Positions 9,200 through 62,427 are shown, counted from the first letter of the stretch. The stretch is 64,000 nucleotides of DNA from Anthoceros angustus (GCA_010909165.1 MU008150.1:496001-560000), one strand, 5' to 3'. Made by a program: numbers and translations. Notes: generated from the sequence alone by a model not told the origin.

Positions 9200-9660
9200 A
9201 TTTGGAAAGCTTGCTTCCCAAGGTATCCAAGTAGGGTGTCGCACCCCACTTTCGCTGCCCATAGGGAATCCTCTCCACTCCCTACGGTAGGGAGACCTCT
9301 CCACTCCCTACATCCTATCTATGTATGGTCAACCTTATGACCCTACGCCTCATCTATGTAGGGTCACTCTTGCTACCCTACGTTCTATCTACCCGTCCAC
9401 ATGCCTCATCTATGTAGGGTCACTCTTGGCACCCTATGCCTCATCTATGTAGGGCTAGCTTTTGACACTCTATGCACTCGCTTAAACTGTCCATGTAGGG
9501 AGCCCCTCTTCATTCTTGTAGGGCCAGCTACCACCCTACACCTGTCCCTCGTAGGGTGCATCTCCCTATGGTAGGGAGTGCCATGCCCTATATCTATAGG
9601 ACAAGTGTCTTTCCCTTGTGTAGGGGCTGTCTCCCCCACATCATTCACACTCGCTTCCTC
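9200..9660. repeat. Array of GTAGGG/CCCTAC direct and inverted motifs between Gypsy pol and the extra ORF
   Basis: Repeated CTCTCCACTCCCTAC and CTATGTAGGGTCACTCTTG units with many inverted CCCTAC/GTAGGG pairs. Confidence 0.6.
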
Positions 9661-9892: not shown

Positions 9893-10134
9893 CTACGGTA
9901 CAAAGTACTTCTTTACTTTCCATCCATTCACCCTAGTAGGGAATGGCTCCCCGTCTAGCTCCTTCAATTGCACTGAGCCATTTTTATACACAGCCATGAC
10001 CTCATAAGGTCCCATCCACCTCAATCTAAGCTTCCCTGGGAAATCCATATAATGGCTGTCATAGAGAAGAACCAAATCCCCGGACACAATAGCCGCCTGC
10101 CTACGTAACTTCCCATCATGTCTATCCTTCCTAA
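9893..10134 (-). mobile_element. C-terminus of a Ty3/Gypsy (Tat/Athila-like non-chromovirus) integrase
   Basis: GDLVLLYDSHYMDFPGKLRLRWMGPYEVMAVYKNGSVQLKELDGEPFPTRVNG (GPY/F module); truncated by the TIR element at 10135. Confidence 0.9.
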
Positions 10135-12719
10135 AACACGATAATTTTGCAAGGGGGGAAATATACCCGATGGGGGTTTACTGGCTTTTATCCTTCGAAG
10201 AGGGTTTCTGATAGGTCTAAAACTAGCCTGTCATGGCATGCTCTAAAAATTTATCACAAAATCATGGTGTCACACCATTGGTTGCATTGTTTTCATGAAC
10301 GGCTGAGGCATGTGAAGGGTTTAGGCTTTCCACAACACATCGCATAATTGAACCCACGTGGTTGACCATTCTTGGCGGTGTTACGCACATAAATATTGCC
10401 TTTCAACTAAGGCGCTATGTAAAAACACCAAAAGAAGACCCGAGTAGTCGTTGTATACTACACTTTGGGCATATGAGGGAAAGGGCGCCGGCCGGCGCCT
10501 TTCCCCGCATACCTCCGGAGAGTTTGGGGTTTAGGTCAAAGTTCCTAGTCGTCGTTCTCACTTCCCACGCAGACAATGTCCTTGTGTGATAGATAGAGTA
10601 CGACGACATCGGATTCAGTTGATATGCAAATGGAACCCTCTTCAAGAAGCACCTTCATTCGATTTTTACCGCACATGGTTGTCACCAAGAATCAATGCCG
10701 CAAGCCCTTGTCACAAGGTCATGTTTCCATTTGCATTCCACTACATCGGGTGGGGCAGAAGTCCTTCAAAGCAAATGACCGCCCTCTGGGGAACACAAAG
10801 GCCTTGTACTTCATGCACACTATTTCAATACCATACAAGTTAACCAAAATCAGAGCTGTTTTAAAATATTTTTAAAATATATAGAGTAAGTGGGATTAGT
10901 TCCCCTCAAAACCACGGCCCAAACCTCAAAGTAATGTTATGTTCCACATTTTGTATTAACATGCCCATATATTCTTCGAGAACGTTGCACATTGTACAGA
11001 TCTGAATTAATGAAAGTAAGTTCATAGGTTTTTCGAAAATGGGTGCAATCGTGGCATGAGAGAAGAATTTCAAAATACGCATCCATAAAGAGGATGCCGG
11101 GCCGGCGGCCGCCTTCCCATGCATGCCTCCCATGGCTCCCCCATGCATGCCTCCGCCGGCCGGCCGGCCCCCCATGCACGCCCTCCCCATGGGCGCCGGC
11201 CGGCGCCCTCCCCATGCACGCCCTCCCCATGGGCTGCCTTTGATAAAATAAATAGCGGTTCAAATGATTTGTGGCTTGGGGTGGTTACTCAAGTGGTTTA
11301 GTAGTAGGTCGTGAGGTCAATTCCTCTACTCCACACACACCAACTTGCCTTTTTAAGGGCATCCTTTAAATTAAAGGATTCTGTCCTTAAGGACGCATTC
11401 ACGAGTCCTTATTTTGGCCATATAGTTAAGAATTTGTAGTTTTAAACCCAAAATCATAGCAAATATCTTTCAATCGTTGATTGCGAGTTTAAAATTACTT
11501 GTAATATTATATTAATGGTCTCAAATTATAAAAGAATCAAAATGGTGAAGAGAGCTACGGCTCACTCAAGTTTCTTCCATTTTATGGAGCTCATTGAAGG
11601 CCGCGACCATTGTATTGCAGAGGTCATAGCTCTTGGGCATGTGCTTCAGTCCTGGACACCATCTTTGCGATCGACCAAGGTTGTACATTGTGATTTGACA
11701 TGTGAAAGATGTCATATTTTGCTCATTCAATTTGAAACATACATTCAAATGGTTGAGGGAATGTGTTACTTGTTTGATAAAGGCAATGATTCAAACCCGT
11801 GAAAGCCAAAACCCAGCACGTGAACGTCCTCGTAAACCAAAATAGGCTACGACCACACCGCCACACGCTTACGCAAGTGCTTGACGCAGTTGGGGAGAAC
11901 GCCAAGTCCATGGGCAAGAACAATGGTTTTGATGACTGGGAGCATGTGGAACTTAGAAGTGGTCATACATTGGCTCAAGGCCCGTATGAGTTGGTGACCA
12001 TGAGTCCCCGCCGCCATGCTTTTAAAGTTTACTGTTTTGTCGATCGTTGTGGACGCCGCCATGTCGGCGTTCACACACAACTTCGGTTTTGTTTCCAAAG
12101 TATAACCATGTTTAGTTTTGATATGAATTTATTGAATGGTGTCCATGAACACATCACGAGGGCGCTGGCCGCTCTAGATAGGCTCTCTATCATGTCAATG
12201 GAAAGAATGCAGACTTTCGATTGTGGATGGAATAAAGAGGCTAATGTCATTTTGAAGACCTGGGGTTTAAATCCTCTTTTAAGGACTGTGTCAATTTCAC
12301 GAAGGGATCTTCCATAATTATGGTGTTGGTGGAACGAATCGTAATTTAGCAATGGTGTTGGATTCGATCCGCTCAGCAATCGGATGAGTCACAACGTAGC
12401 CATATTCCTCCATTCTAAAGTAGACAGACTCAAAACATTGGATTGACGGTGAAAGATCCATTTTTTGTGGTATAGATAGTCCACAAGAGTTCCCACAAAA
12501 TAGTACAAGGCTTGAGTGTTGTGATAGATCGGCCGCCGGCACCACGGGTCATTGAGGCAACCGTAAACATTTGATGTAAGTGTATGTACCCTGTGAATGG
12601 GGTGATGTTTTAACTCGACGTAAAAAGGCTATTTTTGGACTGGGCAGTGTTTGGTCAAGAGGATCCGACCCCAAAAGAAGAGGGTTTGTATATTCCCCCC
12701 CTTGCAAAATTATCGTGTT
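10135..12719. mobile_element. TIR DNA transposon, copy 1 (AACACGATAATTTTGCAAGGGGGG termini)
   Basis: About 30-bp near-perfect inverted termini at 10135 and 12719; internal GGCCGGCCGGCGCC array at 11090-11240; decayed protein-like frame 11560-12600 (-); sub-terminal similarity to 56982-58627. Flanks CTAA/ACAA do not match. Confidence 0.85.
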
Positions 12720-12766
12720 ACAAGCAGAAAATGAAACAGGCAACAAAACAAAAGACAATTACTTAC

Positions 12767-14156
12767 TGTACAAACTGTCCGCACGAATCTGATGAAAATG
12801 AGAAGACCCTGATAAGAAGGTTATGTAACTCTTCCCCACCTTGGACTCCAAACTTGTTCATGCAAAAATATGCACACCTACAATACAATTTAGGCATTAG
12901 AATTTCAGACGTAGCCTAGGATCAATGCAAACCAAAAAGAACAAAAGTACCTTTTTTGAGCCCCACGACCAAATGAACATTGATGATCTCTATGGGAAAG
13001 AATTCGTCGCTCATCATCATCCGAAATCAACTTAACCTCCTTTCGACATGACACAATCTCGAGGTCCTTGCTGATTTTCATGGATGCAACAAGAGCTGCC
13101 TGGGCCCCATGGAAAATCCCGTGAAGCATGTTTATCAAAGGAATGTCAGAGCCGGCCCAGCTCTGGTCCAGAATGCACTTCCTTGTTAAAATTCGGTTAA
13201 AACCCCGGAAGAAAGACATCAGCCTGCACATGGTAAAGTCATTATCAGCAAGTAGTTAAACTTAAAGCAAACTGAAAAGCAAACAACTTACGTTTCTGGA
13301 GAAAATCTGGAGTTGTCTTTCAGGTTTCGAACTTGATGGAAAAAAGGTATCAGAATTAGGTTAAGATCCTTATGCGGAATATCCTCAATAGCACTATCCC
13401 AACCCCTGACACCACTCACTTTCATAAAAGCCTTGACGACTTCGGCACCAGTTATTCTGCCGTTTAGACCTATCCTCCCCACCACTCAAAGCATCATTCA
13501 CAGCTCCCTCGGGGACTGAGGGGTCAAATCCCTGCTCTCTGAAGATTACTTCATTATCAATTTCTTCAATACCCATAGCAAAGTCATCTTGAGGACCAGC
13601 ACACTTCAGCCTTTCAAACATATCAAGGACTTCTTGATCAGGGATGACTTGGTCAGGAACCGGAACAGGCATGGAAAACTGGCCAGCCTGTATTGCATCC
13701 TGTTCAACACGACGTAAATCCCTAGACTGCAGACATGCTTTGGCAGCGCTCACAACCATGGGATCGTCAGTTATCAAAAATCATTCTCCCCACAAATGCT
13801 GGACCCCTCTCTCGAGACCTTTGGGACATAGTTAGTAATCTCTGCAAGAGGACCTTCAACCAATGCCACAGTCAGTGTCCACCCTTCTCCTCTTCACAAA
13901 CTTCAAGCCAGGCATCCTTATTGGATGAGAAGTGCCTTGGCGGTTTAGGAATGTTTTTTTTAGGAACTAAATAAGTTCCTTCACTGTGCACCAACACACC
14001 ATCAACTTTACCATCATCCTGCAGGGGATGAGTTGCAGTATGGGGAACTGCGGATTTGACACGTTGTCTTGTGTACGGCTTAGCCATGACTTCGGCCAGG
14101 GACCCTTGCTTCTTTCCCGATCCAGCAGGCCCAGTGGGTTTCCTTTTAGGTGCCAT
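12767..14156 (-). pseudogene. Crypton-like (DUF3504-type) tyrosine recombinase, spliced, 3'-truncated
   Basis: Exons ~14156-13292, 13223-12951 and 12877-12767 with GT-AG junctions. They splice to MAPKRK...KDLNLILIPFFHQVRNLKDNSRFSPETLMSFFRGFNRIL...FHGAQAALVASMKISK...VKLISDDDERRILS...GAQKRCAYFCMNKFGVQGGEELHNL, matching the DUF3504/Crypton pattern (FF.EVR.KDG..Y.P.SL...FGLRGGEEHR.L). Stop and frameshifts in the N-terminal part. Confidence 0.75.
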
Positions 14157-14249
14157 CTGCAAAGACACAAGAGCGTCAGTGTGATCAAAACAGAGCAAAA
14201 CATCCGGAACCACTTGATTAACTTGAAAAAACCAACATGAAGAAACTTA

Positions 14250-16750
14250 CATGGCATTTAAAACTTCCAAATGAGAACCTGCTGAAGGGTCTAAAAGTTG
14301 ATTATAACACAATCGAAAAGAAGGACAGGGCTGTGGGAGATATGGCAGAGACACATCCTTTGATCTAGACATTGTTAGATTTTGAGATCCCCTCCACTTT
14401 AAGTTAGTGAGAACATATACTTCCATTTCAAACAAAGCCCACTTACTTCCTGAAACAAAAAAAAAGAGCTTTCTGGCAACTGAAATATTAATGACACAAG
14501 AATATAGAATGTTAGCCCGACAATCGAGCCTTGAAACGTCTGAACACAGAGAAAATCAACGAAACTTCAAACTCAGGCAAAACGGTTATCCTGATTCATA
14601 GACAGACCAGAATTAGAATGTTGGCAGGCCAGCCCTTCACACGATAAACTGTTTTGCCTACACAGAGGAAAACAATCGTAGTGAGAAGCAGACATTATTC
14701 TCCCTTAAACCACCAAGAAACTGAAAGATACAATAAACAGAAAAACACAACTGTTAGATATCGCATATACAGATCACATACCAAAATCCTGAAGAACACC
14801 CCTAACAATTTTCTGGATGATGTGCGAGGTTGTCTGCAAAAAATGCCAAGAAAGAGAATAAAAATCAACAGATCCCTAAAAACATGCCGTACGACTAACG
14901 TAGCAGCACCATAGCAGCACAATTCGGACCCAGGCAATAGGAACCTTGACAAGTACTAGTAATCACAGAGAAGCAAAGGGCACCAAGCAGATAGTCAACA
15001 ATAATAACAGACACAGTTAACAATGAACACAGCAACAAACACAATCAACAATGACAACCTCAAAACAAAATGAAATAAACAAGAACAAAATGTTAGACAA
15101 AGCGAAAACAAAAACAAACACACAAACGAATCAAGCACAAACGCGACCAAGACTGTGACTGATAGGAACAAAAAAACAGAAATATAATAACTTCCCCAGA
15201 TAGGTCGGATAGAGAAAAACAGTAAGCGCACACATCAAGACAGAAAACACAACAGACAACACAACACACATACAGATCATAAACAGACAGCACGGATAAC
15301 AGCAAAAACCAGAAAAAACAACCAAAGAGACATGAAATTACACCAACAAAAATCAGACCAATGGAACTCAACAAACCAAATACACAAATAATTGTCTGGC
15401 ATAGACAGTGTGATCAAGTCAATCGAATGAAAGTGACAATACCTTCAAGGTGTTCTGCCCAATGGCGACGATATTTGCTTGAAACAGCGCAAGCACTTCT
15501 AGATGAAAACACAAGAGCGTAAGACGGCAGAACTGTATGACAAACGAACCAAAAAAACTAACGTAAAGTGGATTACCTGTACGAATGACTTTAGAAGCGT
15601 CATGCAGAATTTTGTACAAATTTCGTTAATATTTGCCGCAAAGAGACAGTGGTAAGACAACCACGTTTAAGACAGAGCACTTTGAGAAACAGAAGCTAAC
15701 TAAGTACAGAAGCAAACAAAATTTCCAAAACACGCAGGAAATACCAGTCGAATTTGTAAACCAAACGATCTGATGCCTTCTGCATCATAAGGAGACAACA
15801 GCACAAGTGTTATTACTCAGCAAAAAGGAAAACAGCTGCAATGGAGATAAAAGATAAGACCAAGCAGACACGTAAGCTAGACGAAGACAAACAACAAAGC
15901 GGACCAAGACAGCGCATGATCAACTTCGACGATAGCAAGAATCTGAGAGAAAATCAAAACAGGGACATATGAGACACAGGACAAATCCGACGACTAGATA
16001 TTACTCCTGTCAACTGAGGAGGCACTTCACGTGTGAGTCTTGAACGTTTTCAAAAAAACAAGACACAATGGTGAAGTGTAACAGCACAGAAATTAAGCAT
16101 TCGAGGCCAAAAGACCACAAGAAACAAGCACTGAAAGACAAGACTGACACGAAAACACAAGTTTAAACAAAGCGCAAACAAAACTGAGCTCACCGTTAGA
16201 ACAACATGGCAGTGGCTATGAGCTACAAAAATTAAGACAAAGAAGAAAGAGAGACGGACGAGACTAGGCTGAACGACAATGAACACAAACAGAACCTTCA
16301 AAACAAAACAACAAACAAACAGGTCTACCCTAAAGGCCGTGACACCCTGCCAAGGCTCCTAGCCCTTCGACCCGAAACAACTTTGGAAGCAACCCCTTGC
16401 CCCTCGAACAAGAACCGAAGAACAAAATAACCTAATTCTTCGAAACATGAATAGCCCTTGGCCTTCGGACAACAACCTAAGCCTACATTCGTACAGACAC
16501 AAACTTAAAATAACAGATATATGCCTCATTGAATGTTGAATCACAACAAGAAAAAGGGAATCAGGAAGAACAGAAAAACGAAAAGCAAAATGCTAGACTA
16601 GAGCGCCAACAAAAACGCAACCACTTACCAACTAAAGAAGTGTCCAGATCAACCTACTAAAACCAAACATAACCAAAAACACCGAAAAGCAGGCACGGCA
16701 CTGGCATAAAGAACGACGAGGTGCACAGAAAAAGAAGTGAGAGAATAAGT
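14250..16750. other. Non-coding, strongly strand-biased (CA-rich on +) tract, probably intronic leader of the minus-strand gene
   Basis: Few G on +; only spurious F/V/C/L-rich ORFs on -; ends at a TTGCAG acceptor just before the MAPKRK ATG. Confidence 0.55.
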
Positions 16751-25600: not shown

Positions 25601-27487
25601 AAGGTCAGACAGGTAATCCGGTTCCACCACAACCACAAGCTGCACTTCCAGCCCCAATTCAAGCACCTGTCCAACCCGCACCATTCCAACCACGAATAGG
25701 TCACCAACTAATCAACTTCACCGCCTCCTATGCCTCCGACTAGAATGACATACCTGAACCACCTATACCACGAGCCCGTCTCAGAGATCCACCACCGCCC
25801 CTCCACGATCCCATTGGAAGGATCCACCATATCAGCCTGGAGACTCCCTGACTTCCAAGAGCAACACTGATCTAGCTCCAGCTCCCGAGGGCATGCAACC
25901 ACAGCACACTCATCAGATCAACGTGGCTCTACACCAAGCTATGTCAGCTATTGAAATGCACGACGTGCCTCAGTCAATTGAAGAAGCTTTCAAGTCCCCT
26001 GAGTGGACTGCAGCAGCTAAGTCGGAGTATGACTCACTTATTGCCAACAAGACATGGATACTTACCAAATTACCACCAGGCCGCAAGCCAATATCCTGCA
26101 AGTGGACATTCAGGAGAAAATTGAATCCAGACGGTACTGTATCAAGGTGCAAGGCAAGGCTAGTCGCCAGAGGCTTCAGCCAAGTTCCTGGCTTCGATTA
26201 TGAGGAGAATCGACTCTGTACGTCCAAATCCACATCCATCGATACTTGGCCCGCAACAACACCGCCTAGACATCCACCAAGTCGACGTAAAGACTGCTTT
26301 TCTATATGGTACACTCAATGAAGACATTTACATGCTCCAGCCCCCTGGTTACATCAAGGACAACAAGAAGGTTTGTAAGCTCATGAAATCTCTACTGGAC
26401 TCAAACAAATCATTGCTGTATGGAACGAAACCAGACCAGACGTGGTCCGCTTTACCTCTAGTCGATCCAGCTGCCTACCTTCTTAGACAGAAAGAGCACT
26501 TTGTCATTATTACCTTGTACGTCGACGACAATTTCATCTTTGGAAGCTGTTCTCAGATCATCCAGCATGTCAAAGATTTACTTGCCAAGGAGTACGAAAT
26601 TGTTGACATAGGCCCTCTTAAGTATGCCCTAGGCGTCCAGTTTGAGAGAAACCTAGCAGACCATTCCTTCTTCATTCATCAACAACATTATGTAGACCAG
26701 TTGTTGGACAGGTTTAACTTCAAAGATGCCAGACCTGTTACCACACCCATAGCTGCAGGTGAGAAAGTGTCAGCAGAAGACTGTCCAGCCACACCAAAAG
26801 AAGTCGAAGAAATGAAATCCATACCCTATAGTGAAGCTGTAGGCATTCTGTTGTATAAGCATTCTGGACACGTCCAGACATCTCCCAGGCTGTGAACATA
26901 GCATCCAGATATCTCTCCAATCCTGGTAAGGCCCACTAGATATGTGTCAAACGAATCCTTAGGTACTTGAAAGGAACTGCATCCCTTGACTTTCCTATGT
27001 GACAGAAAAGAAGCTCAGACTACATGTTTTTCGGGACAGACCGGCCGGTGATCCTCGATGCAAGAAAGTCGGCTTCAAGATAATGCACCACGATCAACGG
27101 CTCACTTGTCTCTTGGGCATGCAAGAAGATGCCGACAGTATGCCTCTCATCCACTCAAGTAGTACCGCAACTTCCCGGCAAGAAAAGAAATTCTCCGGAT
27201 ACGGGGTTCCACGTAAGGCCAACGAGGAGGCGATCACCCATAGTACTGCGCGACACCGCCTATCGCCATGACTCTCAACCCTGTGATGCATGCTAGGACC
27301 AAGCACGTCCAGATACAACACCACTTCATCTGGCAAGTTGTGAGCAGCAAGCAAGTCACGCTTAGCTATGTCGCAACTGAGGAGAACACCGCCGACCTGC
27401 TAACCAAAGGACTCTCAAAGGCACCTCACGAGCGGCATGTGCAAGCAATAGGGTTGATAGCACGAGAGACTTATCATGGAGGGGGAG
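22575..27487 (+). mobile_element. Second Ty1/Copia element with a short (~120 bp) non-canonical LTR; no LTR directly after the PPT
   Basis: PBS TGGTATCAGAGC 22695; gag (RDRFTGSDYDI*, zinc knuckle CNWCRIPGHYENEC); GAG-pre-integrase (LLWHCRAGH); integrase (YFLTILDEWSRYC); RT (CKARLVARGF, VDVKTAFLYG, LYVDD); RNase H (HARTKHVQIQHHF...ADLLTKGL); PPT-like GGAGGGGGAG at 27478-27487. Confidence 0.92.
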
Positions 27488-27975
27488 CCAACTTCCGGCT
27501 CCAGGCAAGGGACACTGAAGACTTCCACAACTCGAGCTGCTGGGTTTCTGCGCAGCTCAGCACGCAACTTGGCGGTGGAGTGACAACTTTGTTTGCCGAG
27601 CGAGCAGTGGAACTAAAATTGTGTTACAACACAGCAGATGATCGGGTTGTTTCCCCCTATCAGAAGCCCCTAAGACTCTTGAAGAGGTTGATTCAGCTGT
27701 GTACATTAGAGGGAGATTGGGTGCCGGACGGGTGCGCAGGATCGGGATCTGGTATGATAGCAGCTGTTCAGTTATGCCGTAATGTCATTTCTGTTGATGT
27801 GGATCCCAGGTGTGCTCAATTCATGGATCTTCGAATCAATTCCATGGACAACTGGCCGACGGAAGAGGAGGAGGTAGGCGAGGAGCCTGGCTATGGAGGT
27901 GGCAAGACGTTCAATAAGGAGCCCATGGTGAACAACATGGCTGGTGCCCGGGGTTCATATGTGTCGTTGAAGTAG
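27488..27975 (+). pseudogene. C-terminal half of a beta-class N4-cytosine/N6-adenine DNA methyltransferase (N6_N4_Mtase-like)
   Basis: SPYQKPLRLLKRLIQLCTLEGDWVPDGCAGSGSGMIAAVQLCRNVISVDVDPRCAQFMDLRI matches the HPTQKP..LL.RLI...T..GD.VLDPF.GSGTT..AA....R..IG.E pattern (motif X/I); acidic tail; in frame with the upstream RNase H. Confidence 0.85.
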
Positions 27976-33004: not shown

Positions 33005-35101
33005 TTAGTAGAGCTGTGCTGGTAAGCGAGGAGACGGAACTGCTACCAGTGGCTGCTTCTTGCGAACTGTGATACCAGAACTCTCCGACATGTCCAGGTT
33101 CTCTGGAGTCACGCCTTCGGGTAGGTTCCAGTTGAAAGATTGCACCAGTCTTCCCACGGTGTAGTGGACAGTCAAAGCTCCCAAGGTGACGCCCTGCCCA
33201 TGTGCAGCAATGAACCTAAAGTCATCAAGGGAAGCTTTTGCACGACTGCAGCCTAGCCTGCCATATAGACGAGTAAAACAATGGGGGATTTCTATGTCAC
33301 AAGTAACATGATGTACCGGGCAACGACGTCTTCCTGCACCGAAGGGAAGTAGCTGGTAATGTGCGCCTCTGAAATCCACTTCGCTGCATATCAAGAGTTT
33401 GCACGTCGTCACGATGAATGTCTGCAGCAAGAACAGACAAAACTGTCTCTAGACTTGTAGAGCCCAAATACCTGTTGATGAATCTGTCAGGATTGAAATC
33501 CAAGGGCCGGTCCCAAACGTCTGGATTTCTGGCCATTCCCCAGGCATTGACGTACAGCATTGTGTTGGCAGGAATGTCGAAGCCAGCAACCTGGCAAGCC
33601 TCGGAGGCGCAGTGGGGAATAAGCAAAGGCACAGGAGGATGTAAACGGAAAGTCTCCTTCACCACCGCCTGAAGGTAAGGGAGATCAGGGATATCGGCCT
33701 CGGTGACCACCCGATCCCTCCCCACCACAGCATCCATCTCTTGTTGGGCGGTTTTCAGCTGCTCTGGATGTTTCAGCAATTCTGCCATAGCCCACTCAAT
33801 GCTGAGCATGGCGGTGTCTGTCCCGGCGTCGTACATAGTCTAGAGAGCACATGAGCCATATTAGTTGACACTCATGTATGACTTTGTTCCTGAACACGAT
33901 GACAGAAAGCAGCCCAGCTGGATTTCGAGTCCTGGGACCTGCTACTGCTTACATTGAGGATGCCTTTCATCTCGTTGTTTGTCATGGTGCCTGCTCCGTT
34001 CTCTCCCGGCAAACTGAGAAGAACGTCCAGGACATCCCGAGCTGCTTCAGCACCTGGCTCTAAGGTTCGCAGGTACTGCCGGTGCTCAGCTATGACCATT
34101 TCGTAGAAAGCATCCAGTCGTGCATGGGTTGCTTGCATATCACTCTTAGTCCTGATTAGTCCGTCCAAGAAGCCCAGATAGGGGACAAAGTCTTCGAAGA
34201 GGGGAGACAAGGCCAGCCGGAGAACTTCTTTCACCAGAACCTTGAACTCTTCTGCCTGCAGGCACAATCTCCAAGATCGTTTCCAATTTACACAATCTTC
34301 TCTTCTCTTGCTACCTTGTCAACTACGAGAATTAAATGAACATCCTCACACAAACAAACCAACCTGCTCGGGGTTCGAGACGAAGGACTGGTCGGACTCC
34401 CGCTCCGCCTTCGCTCCGTATGCGAAGAATCTCTTGCTGAAAATGGTTAGGGTGCTGACGTTAAACAGAAACAGAGCCACCTTGTCATGGATGTTGATGC
34501 AAGCTTGCTTGCCCGCTTCAGTCCCGCCAACTTCGTCCAAAATTGATCTCACCATGCCAGCAACTTCCTCCTTTCTCACAACCTGCGACTGCTGCACTCG
34601 CCTGGGGCTGAGGATATGCGTGGACAAAATCGACAGCAGACGCTTCGTGTGTTTGTTGTAGGGGCTGAGTGCCACAGTGTTTTCCTGGAAGACAAGGTAC
34701 TTAGAAGCACCAGAGACGGGCCGTGAAGAAAAGATGGCGTCCCGCTCCTTGAGAAACTCCCGTGCCATGTCGGGGGAATCGATGACCACGGCCAGCCGCG
34801 ACCCCATTCTGAAGCTCACCAGAGGGCCGTACTGCCTGCAGAGATCGAACAGGACCTGGTGAGGCAGCTTGTGGGGATTGGCGAAAATGGGCACCAGGCT
34901 TCCCAGCACAGGCCATCCTCGAGGCCCAGGAGGGAGCCTGGGTTTCCTGCTCACCGACTTCCACAGAATGGTACACAGAATTGCAGCCCCTGCCAATCCT
35001 GCCAACACGAGCTGCCATGTCGCATTGCTGGAGCTCCAAGAGGAAGTGGCTACGGGTCTGAAAAGAAAACGGAGGTGCCCATCTGCACGGAAGCCCGCCA
35101 T
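33005..35101 (-). CDS. Cytochrome P450, CYP71 clan (A-type), 5 exons, ~554 aa, apparently intact
   Basis: Exons 35101-34364, 34255-33953, 33839-33472, 33383-33317 and 33193-33005, all GT-AG with consistent phase. TM anchor + PPGPRGWP, AGTDT, KETFR, PDRF, heme motif FGAGRRRCPG. Confidence 0.93.
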
Positions 35102-35249
35102 GGGGCCGGCCCGGCTCCCGACAGACACTAGGACCGTTTCCACTTCTCCGGGACCGACCCTTGGATTTCTATTTCCTTCCTGGCTTATCTGTTAAATTAA
35201 GTAGTGTCAACTCTCCGAATTAGGAGAAACACAACAAATTCCAAGACCT

Positions 35250-49610: not shown

Positions 49611-49899
49611 AGACACCGGCCAGAGAAGACAAGGTTCCTCGTGGATATGTCGTTCATCCGACATAGACTGAGCCCTAGTAGGCTAGCATTCTGAAGTGAG
49701 GCCTTCGTTGCACCGACAATGGAGATGGTTTGTGCTTCCAAGTCTTTCAGAGAGCAGAACGTGAAAGGCTGCATATTTTGCTGGCAATTCTTCGAAATTT
49801 TCGATAGTGTCTCCGTCTTCACAGTTGATGCAACAAGATGGATGCATCATACTAATCTGCTGAGTTCGTCGATGCTTCGATTGATTGCAGTTGAAGATT

Positions 49900-52287
49900 A
49901 TGGTTTCCATGCTTAACAAATTCCAGCCCCTCTATGGACACATCCAACCTGAAGACACTCCAAATCTTCTGCGGGAGAAAAAGAGGAGGAAATTTGGTTG
50001 TGTGATATGTGCAATGCATACTGGGACCGAGCGCTTGTGGCTAGACAGATTGTCCAAGCCAGTTTCCGTGGATGCGGAGCTGGCTGCTGTGGATTTACAG
50101 ATGGGGCGTCATGGCGCTACATCCAAATGGGATGGACGTGAGCCTGCAAGATACGAAAGGAGAGTGTCGGGTGAAATGGTAAGGAAGCTATGTGAGCAGG
50201 GGCAGGTTGCTGAGGCCGTGGAGGGGCTGGGAGTTCTGGTGCACGGTGACGCTCTTGTTCCCCAATCTCTCTTTTACACTGTGCTGAAGGAATGTGTGGC
50301 TAGGAAGGATTTGTCTCTGAATCGCCGTGTTCATGCTCTCATCGTGAAGGAGGGGTCTGAAGAAGACACGTTCCTGTGCAACCACATCTTGCGAATGTAT
50401 GCTTCTCATGGCAGGTTGCAAGAAGCTATGGATGTGTTCAAGAGAGTCTCCAAACCAGATGCCTTCACGTGGTCTGCCATAATCTCTGCGAATGTTAAGC
50501 AGGGAGAGGATAAGCAGGCCATAGAGCTATATCATCGGATGCGGGGGTCGAGTGTGAAGCCAGATGGGCATGTTTTTGTTGCAGCCCTTCAGGCTTGTGC
50601 GAGGGGAGCAGACCTGAAGTCTGGGCAGGAGGTGCATGCTGATGTTGTGGCTACTGGCGTAGAGCGTGATTTGTTCGTTGGAAGTGGGTTGGTGGACATG
50701 TATGCGAAGTGTGGCAGCTTGGAAGACGCTCAAAGAGTGTTTGACTGTCTTCCTCAAAAAGATTTGGTAACTTGGAGTGCCATGATAGCAGGATATTCCC
50801 AGCAGGGCAGGGGGCAGGAAGCCCTTACTCTCTACAGGGCTATGCATGAAGCGGGCGTTGTAGAACTCGATTCTGTGACATTTGTGTGCGTCCTGCAGGC
50901 TTGTGCCAGTGTGGGTACTGCGGCTTTGGAGCAGGGGAAGCAGCTTCATGCACAGATTGGAGACCTAGGACTTCAAGCTGATGTCTTCATAGCCAGCAGT
51001 TTGGTGAATATGTACGCAAAGTGTGGCAGCCTGGGTGATGCCCAAAGAGTCTTTGACGGGCTTCCTCAAAAGGATATGGTGACCTGGAGTGCCATGATAG
51101 CAGGATATGCGAATCAGGGCATGGGGCAGAAGGCCCTTGATCTGTACAGGGATATGCAAGAAGAAGGCATCATTGCACTCGATTCTATGACATTTGTGTG
51201 CCTCCTCCAGGCATGTGCCAGTGTGTGCAACTCGGCCTTGGAGACGGGAAGGCAGCTTCATGCACAGATTAGGGAACAAGGACTTCAAGATGATGTGTTT
51301 GTGGCCAGCAGTTTGGTAAGCATGTATGCCAAGTGTGGCAGCTTAGAGGATGCTCGGGCCGTGTTTGACAGCCTTGGTGAGAAAAATGTGGTGACCTGGA
51401 GTGCGATGATAGCAGGATATTCCCAGCAGGGCATGGGACAAGAAGCCCTTGGTCTTTATAGGGCTATGCAACTAGAAGGGATTGTTGCACCCAATCCCGT
51501 GACATTTGTGTGCCTCCTTCAGGCTTGTGCAAGTGTAGCAGCCTTGCATCTGGGAAGGCAGCTTCATGCACAGATAAAAGAACAAGGGCTTCTAGGGGAT
51601 GTGCTTGTAGCAGTCAGTTTGGTGAACATGTATGGAAAGTGTGGTAGCATGGTTGATGCACGTCAGGTTTTTGAAGCGTTAACAGGAAGAGATGTTGTTG
51701 TCTGGAATGCACTGATTGCAGGGTACACCAATCAAGGAGACAGTGAGGAGGTCCTTGATCTGTTCCTCAGAATGGAAGAGGATGGCATACAGCCAGATAG
51801 CATCACGTTTCTTAGCGTCCTGACAGTATGCAGTCATACAGGTCTAGTGCACAAGGGGCGAGAGTATTTTGAGGCTATGACCCGACAGTATGGCATCACT
51901 GCCTCCGGAGACCACTACACATGCATGGTGAATCTCCTGGGCCGTGCAGGACACTTGGACGAGGCACTAGCTTTAGTAAGGACAATGCCTGTACAGCCCG
52001 ATGCTGCAGTTTGGCACAGTCTGTTGGGTGCTTGTCAAAAGTGGAGCAACGTAGAGGTGGGACGCCATGCGTTCGAGGAGGCAGTAAAGCTAGACAGGAC
52101 AGATCCCACAGCACGCGTGTTGATGTCGAACATAAACACCAGTGCCCTGATGTGGGAGAGGGCACAGAAGTTGCATGCGGAGAGAATAAGAATTAGGGCA
52201 TGGAAGGAGCCAGGCCAGACCTTGTGGACAGACATGGATGGACTGGTCTACAGCTTCTTGGTTGGGGAGAACAAGCACCCAAATTGA
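49900..52287 (+). CDS. PLS-class PPR protein (about 17 PPR motifs + E1/E2/E+, no complete DYW), candidate organellar RNA-editing factor; N-terminus uncertain
   Basis: Single long ORF with repeated P-L-S triplets (VTWSAMIAGY / TFVCLLQAC / SLVNMYAKCG), P2-L2-S2, E domains, ending WKEPGQTLWTDMDGLVYSFLVGENKHPN*; half PDF motif TGTERLWLDRLSKPVSVDAEL near the start. Confidence 0.92.
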   Translation: MVSMLNKFQPLYGHIQPEDTPNLLREKKRRKFGCVICAMHTGTERLWLDRLSKPVSVDAELAAVDLQMGRHGATSKWDGREPARYERRVSGEMVRKLCEQGQVAEAVEGLGVLVHGDALVPQSLFYTVLKECVARKDLSLNRRVHALIVKEGSEEDTFLCNHILRMYASHGRLQEAMDVFKRVSKPDAFTWSAIISANVKQGEDKQAIELYHRMRGSSVKPDGHVFVAALQACARGADLKSGQEVHADVVATGVERDLFVGSGLVDMYAKCGSLEDAQRVFDCLPQKDLVTWSAMIAGYSQQGRGQEALTLYRAMHEAGVVELDSVTFVCVLQACASVGTAALEQGKQLHAQIGDLGLQADVFIASSLVNMYAKCGSLGDAQRVFDGLPQKDMVTWSAMIAGYANQGMGQKALDLYRDMQEEGIIALDSMTFVCLLQACASVCNSALETGRQLHAQIREQGLQDDVFVASSLVSMYAKCGSLEDARAVFDSLGEKNVVTWSAMIAGYSQQGMGQEALGLYRAMQLEGIVAPNPVTFVCLLQACASVAALHLGRQLHAQIKEQGLLGDVLVAVSLVNMYGKCGSMVDARQVFEALTGRDVVVWNALIAGYTNQGDSEEVLDLFLRMEEDGIQPDSITFLSVLTVCSHTGLVHKGREYFEAMTRQYGITASGDHYTCMVNLLGRAGHLDEALALVRTMPVQPDAAVWHSLLGACQKWSNVEVGRHAFEEAVKLDRTDPTARVLMSNINTSALMWERAQKLHAERIRIRAWKEPGQTLWTDMDGLVYSFLVGENKHPN

Positions 52288-56689: not shown

Positions 56690-59050
56690 CCACTTAGCGC
56701 GTTGTCCAATGGCTGGACAACGTATTGCTACACACGACGCCGTCCGAGGCATCATGTTCTCGATGGCCAAGAAGAACGGTTTCTTCCCTTTCGAGGAGCG
56801 GCAGTATACTCTGCCCAATGGCGTCTCGATCAGAGCTGACCTTTTCTTGACGCGAGGGGACGAGGTCTCGGTTGCGGATGTGGTTATCACTGACCCAACT
56901 AGAGTTTCTGTTAGTGACCATGTCATCATCAACCCTCAGGTTGGGTGGCGGAATGGAGCGCAACTAAGAACATTTACAAGTAACATGATAATTTTTGAAG
57001 GGGGGGAATATAGTAACCCCCTTCGGTCGAGACAGCACCCCCTTGTCACGAAGAACACCTTTCCTAGAACAGCATATCTACCCTACTTTGATAATGCGCA
57101 CACCCCTTCTGAGGTCATACCTTTGATAAAAGATGCACTTTCAAGTCTACACCCGAGAACTGGAGCACAGTAGGGTGTGGGCCCATTTGCGTTTTAGTAG
57201 AATGCGTAGAGGGCTGCCATTTTCATATGTTTATTACAACCGAAAACTTTTACTTTCAAGTGGTGGAACACAATGAAAACAATCTGTACTGTGGAGTTTC
57301 ATTTCAGTGGTCGTGAGAACATTGCAACAAACAACTGGTAAAGGAGGAAGTGGTCATCAGCATCGACAATAGCCATTGAAGAGTGCGGCCCGGCGACTCA
57401 TCCATGCCTTGCAACTAAGTCAAGTACCACCGCCATATTCGAGGTGGTCCATATTGTCCTACCGAAGTTGTCGTTCTCCTCCATTGCTTGCCTCTTCAAT
57501 AGTATCATTCTTGCCTTGATCCATGCCATGCCGGGCCGGGCCGGCGCCCATAGGCAAGGCATGGCGTGTGCGCCGGCCGGCCGGCGCCCATGGATAGGGT
57601 GGTGTAGGGAGGCGCCGGCCGGCCGCCACAGGCAAGGCATGGCGTGTTGGAGGGCGTGCGGCCGGGAGGCAAGGCATGGCGTGTTGGAGGGAGGCGCCGG
57701 CCGGCCGCCCACCCTCCGCGCACCACCCGTAGGCCCACCGATGGGTGGCGGAGGGAGGCGCCGGCCGGCCGCCCACCCTCCGCGCACCACCCGTGGGTGG
57801 GCAAACGGGTGGTGCGCTGGCGAGGGCCGGGCCGGGCGCCGCCTCAAACACCACCCGTAGGCCCACCGATGGGTGGCGGTGTGGAGGGAGGGCGCCGGCC
57901 GGCCGGCGCCCTCCCTCCGCGTGCCCATTGTGGTCCTCCTTTCCACGCACCCCCTGTACGTGGCACTTCCATCGAAAATTCAGTAGGCTAACCTTAGAAG
58001 CAAATGCCGTCTGAAATCGAGCCAGCATCTGGTCGGTCGAGTGTAGAGGGTACTCCTCCCGGAATCATCTGTATGCGGTGGACAAAAAAGCGATAAGGGA
58101 TAAGCTCTACGAGTTGCATGGCTTCATACAACCTGCGAGTCAAAGTGCCGCTAAAGATAGTGATGACAATGCAGGAGAAGCTGGACCAAGTGATGACGAA
58201 GGATTGAACTCTGGGGATGAGTGAAACCGAAATCTCGCTTTTTCCTGTGGTCCCGAGTTAATGTTGTAAGTCCGTTGTCATGTTACCGTGTTAGGGAAAT
58301 ACCCTGTCCGTGGCTTTTGTGGTGTCATAACAAAACCACATTTTCCTCCCAAAACTGAGTTTACAGTCGTTCCTTCCCGGCAGGAACGGCCTTCCTCACC
58401 ATTCCTACTTTGCATTATTTCCCTAGGTTCGAGTTTGCGACTACCATTCGACACAAACATTGCTGGATGGAAAGTAGTAACTTCACTGGGTGACACCCTT
58501 TTTTTCGGAGCTGTTTTTCGCAATGCCTTCAAAACGCTATTTTAGAGCCCATCAAAAACCCTCTTCAGAAATTATTTGCGGAAAACCCCCTTCGAGATTA
58601 TTCACCCCCTTCAAAAATTATCATGTTAAGTACAGGCTCATGCAGCAAGGTCACATTTTCATCCCCCCTTGCTATTGAAACCCATGGTTCCTTGGGTAAG
58701 GTTTTTTCTCGTTTTATCAAGGAGTGCGCAAGGGCCTACCACAACGATAGGGGCGGGTTTAGCCTCCCTCTTTCCAGTGTCGTGGCATATTTCACGCCAT
58801 GGGTTTCCATCGCCCTGCAAAGGGCGTTGGCTAGCGCCATCTTTAGGACGATCACGAGTGTTGGAGACGCCGCATCTGCAACACCAGTAGTAAGTCGGCC
58901 CTTCCCTATCTCAAACGGTGACATCTTGGGGCCGGTTGGGGGTTATAGGGTAGATTAGTGTGGGGGTACGCCCCCCTGGCTTGGGGCCCCGTCATGGGTT
59001 GTCCCCTTTCGCCTCGGGGTAGGTGGGATTTCCCAATCTCGTTCTTTTTA
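56690..59050 (+). mobile_element. 3' end of an RLE-type (CRE/R2-group) non-LTR retrotransposon, split by a TIR element
   Basis: HLARCPMAGQRIATHDAVR (CCHC), RADL...DVVITDPT, then after the insert KYR...FIPLAIETHGSLG...VSIALQRALASAI (PD-D/ExK nuclease). Confidence 0.85.
56982..58627. mobile_element. TIR DNA transposon, copy 2 (non-autonomous), with 4-bp TSD AAGT
   Basis: AACATGATAATTTTTGAAGGGGG inverted termini; AAGT at 56978-56981 and 58628-58631; excision restores the LINE KYR frame; GC-rich GGCCGGCCG array 57520-57920. Confidence 0.92.
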
Positions 59051-60540: not shown

Positions 60541-62427
60541 AAGCATGTCAGCGTGTCAACAAAGTCGGCGACGGCCATCAAACCCTAATGCTACGAATTT
60601 TTTTTTGAGACATGCATTCTGTACACCGGAAGGAGGATTTGGAGAATCGTTGTTATACTTGCAACACTCCGAAACTGTCCGGCATATCGAAACAAAGTTT
60701 TCAATGGGACTGTATGTTCTTGAGAGATTTTTTCTAGAGAGATTTTTAGAGCTGAGCATTCGGTACACCAACTTTTAGCTCCAAAAAATGTTTTCCATCT
60801 CAAAATGCTCTCATTTTAGAATTGAGCATTCGATACACCAACTTTAACTCCGTAGTGATTTCCATCGCCCAAAACGCCCTCATTCAAATTTCCAGGGATT
60901 TCATTGAGAAGAATACTCGCAATCCAAATCTCTAAACCTTGAATTCCAGCATCCGAGATGTAGAAGAAGAAGAAGAATTGTATTTAAGTCCACTAAGGAC
61001 GGATTTTCGTCATGGGACTGAAATATAGCAACTACATAGATTGCGATAAAATGGTTTGGACGAATGCAAAGGTAAAATTCAAACAAGATAAATAATCTTT
61101 AATTAATCAACAGTGTCAATGAAAATACGTGAATGAGGGCTAAACACCACCAATTCATCCTTACGAAAGAAAGTCACTTGACCTAGAGCACGAGCAGCTC
61201 TGAAAGCGGGTAACTTCTCCTTCTTAGTCTTCCATTGCAATGGTGTAAGATCCTAATTGATGTATAACTGAGTTGTCCGTAACATAGACCTAGCCATCAT
61301 AACCTGGAGGCAATAATCCATAGAGTGAAAAGTCCTAATCAATATGAGCTCTCTATCAGGATCCTTTCCAAGCTAGAAGGCTCGAGGAATGACCACATCG
61401 ACCTCTAGCCAATTGAGAAACTCTTTTGCAGCCACAAGTGGTGCAACAATATCATTACCAAGACCAAAATTTCTCAAGTTCAAAATACGTTGAGCATGGT
61501 CCCCGTCGTCTCAGAAACAATTTCCGATATTATGTTACCACCGGGATAAGAAGAAGCAAGGGATCATTAAACACTAGGAGGTTTTTACCAGTAAGCTTCT
61601 CAAAATATGTAGATTAAATTTATTCCATTGAAGTGAAATAATCTCGAAATATGTAGATTAAATTTATTCCATTGAAGTAAAATAATTTTTCAAATTCATG
61701 GCTTTCTTCTGTATAGTTCGTGAAGAAACTTCATTTTCTAACTTCATTTTGTAACTTCATGTGGGTTAGCGTTATTAAATAAAGTAAGGAAAGTAAGGCA
61801 TCAACCTTGGAGATGCTTTGTACTCATCTCAGCGGTCGGGGATGCGGGCCAGCTGTTCCCGCTGTTGCAGAGAGGGAAGTTGCTGTTGTCCGGCAACTGT
61901 GGTGTCAATGCCAGTCAAGCCGCGCGTGTCAGTTGTTCAGTTGAGCGAGCAAATAGAAACAATCGGTGAAAGTGGAACTTCGTGTTGGTGGTACGGTTTC
62001 AGAGCAGGTAGAAGCAACGTGACGCACTGATGATGAAAATTGCTTGGATTTTGCTGCTGCTTGTCGCATCTTGCACATGCGCCTGGCACCGTCCCTGCTG
62101 TCGATCAAACGTCCACACCAACTCCTTGACTGTTGAAGGAAGTCTCAGATGCCGTCTGCTTTGAATCAACAAACGACATTGTTCTAATTCCCTTCAACTC
62201 CCCAAGCACGTCCGGAAGTCTCCCTTTTCCCAGCTACCGACATTGTGAGCCCGGACATCTCCTTTTCCCAGCTACCAACATTGTGTGCAATGCAGCGGAA
62301 TAGACATGCTTAGAGAAGCCGTTTGCAAGCCAGGAGCTCTGGCTTTGTTTTGTCGTGCACAAGACGCAGATGTCTTAAAACCTGCTGAATAGGTGAGGGA
62401 AGAGACAGAAATCGGGCATTACAGAGA

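Follow-up and report, generated by a model that had tools for sequence, protein, structure and literature searches.

Cryptons feature neither TIRs nor LTRs, and their ends are flanked by short (4–6 bp) direct repeats (PMC13465315). Records of them come only from animals, fungi and stramenopiles (Kojima and Jurka 2011, PMC3212892); proteins carrying DUF3504 are widespread in Opisthokonta (2026 Glomhopper paper, PMC13465315). CryptonA elements (PMC3212892) and Glomhoppers, the Glomeromycota subfamily (PMC13465315), have a single recombinase gene, in which introns may occur, and no reverse transcriptase; the plant family described here is built in the same way. As in the plant family, most genomic copies of CryptonA and Glomhoppers are truncated or decayed (PMC13465315). 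A 2022 review of land-plant transposons makes no mention of Cryptons, and leaves out DIRS elements because they are known from green algae only. In a 2015 survey, Crypton is among the superfamilies reported in all the groups studied, and mentions at the annotation level therefore exist. No description of a land-plant Crypton was found in the full-text literature on Crypton combined with moss, fern, Marchantia or Physcomitr-, in line with the earlier note on this DNA, which knew of no well-characterised example.

The window, that is the whole stretch of DNA analyzed, measures 64,000 nt and comes from Anthoceros angustus (GCA_010909165.1 MU008150.1:496001-560000). The part studied spans positions 12767–14156, and the gene is on the minus strand. 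The locus holds a copy of an intron-containing tyrosine-recombinase gene, dead and truncated to the 5' half; the gene belongs to a family present in multiple copies in a land plant. It is a fossil, with no function of its own. The copy probably derives from the single gene of a Crypton-like, and in particular CryptonA-like, DNA transposon which has multiplied in a land-plant genome. The earlier note had seen in it a decayed copy of an unannotated Crypton-type lineage of land plants, and this reading is supported by the recombinase features of moss relatives, the multi-copy status, the retention of introns and the lack of a reverse transcriptase. The segments of the gene, and the elements which flank its truncated end, are listed in Table 1.

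Table 1. Segments of the recombinase gene copy and adjoining elements, numbered from the first nucleotide of the window
Feature	Position	Strand	Description
Exon 1, piece A	13875..14156	-	ORF from ATG 14156 (MAPKRKPTG..., 94 aa), stop at 13874-13872
Exon 1, piece B	13777..13872	-	32 open codons in another frame, flanked by two 1-nt deletions relative to sister copies
Exon 1, piece C	13403..13774	-	Open frame ITDDPMVV...ESEWCQG, upstream of the putative recombinase fold
Exon 1, end	13292..13401	-	Start of the putative N-terminal (core-binding-type) domain, ..IEDIPHKDLNLILIPFFHQVRNLKDNSRFSPET / ..WDSAIEDIPHKDLNLILIPFFHQVRNLKDNSRFSPET
Intron 1	13224..13291	-	68 nt, GTAAGT...CAG
Exon 2	12951..13223	-	Rest of the putative N-terminal domain plus linker, LMSFFRGFNRIL...ISDDDERRIL...GRGAQK
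Intron 2	12878..12950	-	73 nt, GTAC..TAG
Exon 3	12767..12877	-	Start of the putative catalytic domain with box I; RCAYFCMNKFGVQGGEELHNL..., box I KFGVQGGEELHNL
Intron 3 stub	12720..12766	-	47 nt; the gene stops here
Non-autonomous TIR element	10135..12719		Inverted ends of ~30 nt, GC-rich core; adjoins the intron 3 stub
Ty3/gypsy-type integrase, C-terminal fragment	9896..10134	-	..GDLVLLYDSHYMDFPGKLRLRWMGPYEV..; weak Pfam match to SH3_Tf2-1 (E 0.12)

The peptides quoted in the earlier note were all found on the minus strand. The three exons, separated by canonical GT-AG introns, splice into one open peptide of 192 aa. Stops are present inside both introns 1 and 2, and neither length is divisible by three. 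The last residues of exon 1 (..CCAGAAAC) are followed by a GTAAGT donor, which sets the boundary at 13292. A perfect consensus donor (GTAAGT) closes exon 3 in phase 2, so that the apparent stop after ..GQFVQ just marks where intron 3 begins.

An exhaustive phmmer search with exon 2 against 1.84 billion representatives gave a single match, the protein P0001 (E 5.8e-4); tblastn matches of the same exon have E values of 6e-13 to 2e-11. Through P0001, a small group of unnamed proteins was reached; a hypothetical protein from Ceratodon purpureus, a moss, is the sole named member. The remaining relatives reside in plant-like contigs, where chalcone synthase and ankyrin/PGG genes are neighbours. The three window pieces tile colinearly on the moss proteins in the alignments. 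Matched to an HMM made from moss sequences only, the spliced 192-aa peptide reached 78.2 bits, with E 6e-17 when scaled to 1.8e9 sequences; the highest score among 2000 shuffled peptides was 8.8 bits. The alignment, which at the end of exon 1 starts at profile position 25, is ungapped through both splice junctions, and bears out the three spliceable exons of an intron-containing recombinase proposed earlier. Introns 1 and 2 are absent from the moss genes; intron 3 is found in them at the same codon position and in the same phase, after ..GFLR. Profile searches with alignment A1, as searches with the moss C-terminal exon, retrieved further moss-like fragments only, and no relative was confirmed in the metagenome loci scanned. 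Piece C (..NNWCRSRQGFYESEW..) gave the impression of corresponding to the W..R.R..F..W helix of the moss proteins, but its homology to the moss N-terminal extension was not significant in an HMM test. Weak tblastn matches at 60616–60765 were rejected as chance, as inspection showed no recombinase-like frame.

Several paralogous copies coexist within one moss-like assembly, and share a colinear block of ~3.5–4.5 kb. The copies on contigs L007 and L008 have about 72% DNA identity. For the moss copies in general the figure is about 70%, and protein identity exceeds DNA identity. The L007 relative (L007:6001-8264, ena:ERZ25073694:ctg132379) is apparently intact, and lies 5 kb from a chalcone-synthase gene. 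It features an exon for the N-half, an intron of ~110 nt, and an open exon of ~520 codons which starts with YDETSSKNHK.. and contains ..DITNKSGRVTSITRM.. and ..TTGHRNLKTLNRYD.. Its catalytic residues are R (codon CGA), K (SKN), KxxR (NKSGR), H (TGHRN) and Y (RYD). A lysine at the position of the first histidine is known also in type IB topoisomerases. L007 is the best candidate for a functional Crypton-like recombinase of plants.

The C-terminal exon of L007, that of the L008 paralogue and the P0012/L009 lineage match profiles of tyrosine integrases only, and always in the catalytic C-terminal part. PF00589 matches the moss C-halves with E values of 3e-5 (24.3 bits, slightly short of the gathering score, 27.1), 2.7e-4 and 4.2e-4. 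Other matches are to the PHROG families phrog_1 (integrase, E 1.6e-8) and phrog_216 (E 4.5e-7), and to archaeal XerA in NCBIfam (E 1.9e-4); no non-integrase family was found at E <0.01 in the profile searches with the moss C-half. Sequence searches of the PDB with the moss relatives returned Tn1549 Int and XerA only, at non-significant levels, with K/H, R, H and Y lined up. The protein-language-model neighbours of both halves are clusters of eukaryotic recombinases (scores 0.94–0.97, family consistency 8/10 and 10/10). Among them are DUF3504/QRICH1 and DUF3504/Phage_integrase clusters from cnidarians and molluscs, NDC10_II, DUF3435, and unnamed diatom clusters. ESM Atlas was uninformative for exon 2 (best score 0.65). 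AlphaFold2 models of the N-half and C-half were poor (pLDDT 50 and 48, respectively), and a fold search with one such model gave TM values <=0.32, which are meaningless.

By these profile and neighbour matches, the moss family appears to be one of tyrosine recombinases. The window fragment would therefore be the N-terminal domain, plus box I, of a moss-type enzyme. Its predicted recombinase identity rests on transitive homology through the moss relatives, as no profile of Pfam (searched with five separate ORF pieces), NCBIfam or PHROG matches the window pieces themselves. The earlier note had assigned the gene to DUF3504, and this assignment was not upheld. PF12012 did not match, at E up to 10, any of the five separate window pieces, P0001, or the C-terminal exons of L007, L008 and P0012, nor, at E up to 1, P0002 and P0003; these searches covered separate window pieces, single exons and the proteins P0001 to P0003, and a weak match of the whole domain in the spliced protein could have escaped them. 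The family has been kept out of DUF3504 on these profile results, because PF12012 never matched; the matches are to general tyrosine integrases only, and come through the moss relatives.

Sequencing runs were located through the neighbouring PPR gene, as none was listed for the element itself. This gene (49885–52287, plus strand) is intron-less, and encodes an 800-aa PLS-class PPR protein with an E motif, typical of the organelle RNA-editing factors of land plants. Two cytochrome P450 exons (PF00067, E 1e-43 and 1e-18) lie at 33297–35143 on the minus strand. About half of the sampled words of the PPR gene occur in organism A, the source of X1, a related public DNA run. In the interval 12400–14400, 167 short contigs from X1 align at 90–99% identity. 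They show numerous variant letters and indels, and as many as 13 different contigs cover one site. Their summed depth, which does not equal the true copy number, is 200–700 across 12802–14074, against 0–35 in the flanks. Such a pattern points to a diverged repeat family, not to the single-copy host gene which, according to the earlier note, would have spoken against an element. From the copy number we infer that the element has been mobile. The X1 depth falls to zero above 14074, and places the 5' end of the element somewhere above 14074–14156. The region directly upstream of the start codon (14000–16000) has a strongly A-rich plus strand (AT skew 0.38), and contains no ORF of note. No contig from three RNA runs maps to 12400–14400, which is not proof of silence.

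The frame opened by the ATG at 14156 shifts at 13873, and again at 13777. Behind 13873, an extra G is present in 5 X1 contigs, exactly at the point where the frame of piece A gives way to that of piece B; an extra G behind 13777, found in 7 contigs, puts pieces B and C into one frame. Pieces A to C would therefore be one ORF in many sister copies, from which the window copy differs by two 1-nt deletions. A third frameshift probably occurs in exon 1 near 13402, although the HMM test of piece C gave no support. The copy is dead, and more decayed than had been noted. The Arg of box I is encoded by CGA or AGA in the moss relatives, and is replaced by Gln in the window copy. The codon is CAA, as read in the earlier note. 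Its origin from CGA by deamination is plausible, because relatives have CGA, and the observed/expected CpG ratio is 0.46 in the element versus 0.70 in the window. The residues following box I have been lost by the truncation at 12767, and the catalytic set is consequently incomplete. The parts containing K, HxxR, H and Y are absent from the whole window, where tblastn with the moss C-terminal exon found nothing. Decay marks also many of the moss copies. A moss-like copy on contig L001 (4729–4758) shows the same CGA to CAA change in box I, evidently independent, and two in-frame stops in the catalytic exon; L006 is truncated, and L008 and L009 carry stops or frameshifts.

According to the earlier note, the catalytic half had been cut off by the TIR element. 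This half is missing, and the TIR element is real, its arms (10135–10166 and 12688–12719) being 97% complementary, which is not expected by chance. The gene ends, however, inside intron 3, 47 nt before the element, and a gypsy fragment lies beyond it. A second copy of the TIR element, located at 56981–58628, is 1.65 kb long; its TIRs measure 30 nt, and its GC-rich core is similar. The two copies have terminal repeats AACAYGATAATTTT..AAGGGGGG and a core of GCCGGCCGGC repeats. The 1.65-kb copy may be flanked by a 4-bp duplication (AAGT). No target-site duplication is recognisable at the 2.6-kb copy (10135–12719), which joins two unrelated sequences. The gypsy integrase fragment starts exactly at the far TIR boundary, and is not part of the recombinase gene; the possibility that the rest of the gene is found beyond the TIR element was rejected, as the fragment occupies this side. 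Since the fragment lies on the far side and a target-site duplication is missing, the TIR element is not a simple insertion into the recombinase gene, and the truncation involved at least one more insertion or a rearrangement. Short tandem or direct repeats are found at 9262–9454, just beyond the gypsy fragment. Elsewhere in the window, a Copia-type reverse transcriptase ORF (26200–26895, plus strand; RVT_2, E 8e-28) precedes an ORF with a DNA methylase domain of the bacterial N6/N4 type (27268–27975, plus strand; PF01555, E 6.5e-10).

In the model which we favour, the intact gene would encode a Cre-type tyrosine recombinase, made by a long N-terminal region, a helical core-binding domain with a KLDxxxYPPxSL-type motif, and a catalytic domain equipped with the box I Arg, a hairpin Lys, KxxR, GH and Tyr. 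With no RNA intermediate, such an enzyme would cut the element out as a circle and put it back by site-specific recombination, and introns would persist in genomic copies for this reason. The window copy would have been silenced and have decayed. The box I Arg may have changed to Gln through a CpG transition, exon 1 was broken by the 1-nt deletions, and a rearrangement involving the TIR element and the gypsy element may have removed all that followed exon 3.

Alternatively, the locus may be a pseudogenised paralogue of a host gene family domesticated long ago, as ZMYM/QRICH1 in animals, and not a transposon copy. We hold this to be unlikely. The moss copies are old, as indicated by the level of DNA identity and by the higher protein identity; one of them has open exons, and an intron position and phase are common to the moss genes and to this plant, which speaks for a host gene. 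Against this stand the many diverged X1 copies confined to the element, and the broken state of most copies (those in the window, L001, L006, L008 and L009). The intact gene, moreover, keeps its catalytic residues, unlike domesticated DUF3504 genes (PMC13465315). The lack of RNA contigs over the element points weakly in the same direction. Chance resemblance of short ORFs to recombinase motifs, which might be invoked as no curated profile matches the window pieces and the Atlas search with exon 2 was uninformative, hardly deserves consideration. It had already been refuted by the moss HMM test (78 bits versus <=8.8 bits for the 2000 shuffles), and three pieces colinear across GT-AG junctions, as the intron position and phase common with moss, also speak against it.

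A fragment of a DIRS/Ngaro-type retroelement, or of an integrated virus-like element using a tyrosine integrase, seems even less probable than a host gene. Tyrosine recombinases are found also in DIRS, Ngaro and polinton-like elements, and retroelement debris does adjoin the fragment; the debris, however, comes from a gypsy DDE integrase, which is unrelated. Genomic copies keep their spliceosomal introns, and neither intron-less nor intron-skipping joints were seen in the DNA run X1, which argues against an RNA intermediate. No reverse transcriptase, RNase H, methyltransferase or capsid gene adjoins the recombinase gene in the window, in L001 or in L007. Host-type genes are found within about 2–5 kb of the gene in both contigs (~1.8 kb upstream and 2.5 kb downstream in L001). 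The only RVT_1 ORF, in L008, is on the opposite strand, ~3 kb upstream, and outside the block common to the copies. Box II is followed by GH, which is found also in CryptonA, and not by the W seen in the DIRS elements of the published alignment. The motifs, the retained introns and the recombinase-only architecture, with no reverse transcriptase, agree with a CryptonA-like DNA transposon.

As to the origin of the family, land plants might have a CryptonA-like lineage of their own, ancient and transmitted vertically since before mosses and the lineage of this plant diverged, or might have received it by transfer from arbuscular-mycorrhizal fungi, in which ~1,800 CryptonA copies are known; the proposal is tentative, and on balance doubtful. 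Vertical inheritance is suggested because intron position and phase are shared. The plant lineage may still be active in some bryophytes, as one moss-like copy has open exons and all catalytic residues. An ancient plant lineage, if confirmed, would carry the DUF3504/CryptonA clade outside the opisthokonts, the group from which it is described. For the annotation of plant genomes, a CryptonA-like recombinase family, intron-bearing and multi-copy in mosses and in a non-seed land plant, would mean an additional transposon class. It would explain orphan hypothetical proteins such as that of Ceratodon purpureus, and would allow vertical inheritance of Cryptons to be tested against their transfer between fungi and plants.

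Among described systems, prokaryotic recombinases of the PF00589 type (Cre, XerC/D, XerA, Tn1549 Int) align with the C-terminal motifs of the moss relatives at R, H and Y, but similarity is marginal (E 3e-5 to 0.5). Unlike them, the plant genes are eukaryotic, contain introns, and have long additional regions at both the N and the C terminus. DIRS1-like and Ngaro elements share with the plant family a tyrosine recombinase with an N-terminal domain of the core-binding type. They feature, however, RT/RNase H, terminal repeats and an RNA route, in contrast to the plant family, which has no reverse transcriptase, keeps introns, and carries GH. CryptonS, CryptonF and CryptonI, found in stramenopiles, fungi and insects, respectively, are recombinase-only DNA transposons like the plant family, but differ in the context of box I. 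In the published alignment these groups, as DIRS, have a Trp (G-x-W) where the plant family and CryptonA have a His (GH). Diatom clusters are among the best language-model neighbours of the moss N-half, and one of them structurally resembles a diatom protein bearing GCR1_C, a domain not found in the plant genes.

The proposed likeness to CryptonA rests on the architecture, on the protein-language-model neighbours, and on a comparison of motifs made by eye with the alignment of Kojima and Jurka (Additional file 4, PMC3212892), which provides a lead and not a statistical test. CryptonA motifs are exemplified by L-R-G-N-T-E-H, G-R-E-Y-L-E-F-S-E-R-Q-T-K-T, TN-H-S-A-R, and S-G-H-R-N...Y (PMC3212892). 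In the plant family, box I reads F-x-I-R-G-N-S-E-L-H (F-G-V-Q-G-G-E-E-L-H in the window copy), and the other motifs are G-R-G-F-L-R-Y-D-E-T-S-S-K-N, W-Y-K, TN-K-S-G-R, and T-G-H-R-N...R-Y. The plant family differs from CryptonA in the first His of HxxR, which is a Lys (NKSGR), in the host, here a land plant, and in PF12012, which recognises no piece or relative. By eye, the two appear to have in common a box I of the type F-G-x-R-G-x-x-E-H, the motifs G-x-x-[YF]-L..E..K-[TN], W-[YF]-x, TN-x-S-x-R and GH-R-[NS]...Y, and H rather than W before the Tyr.
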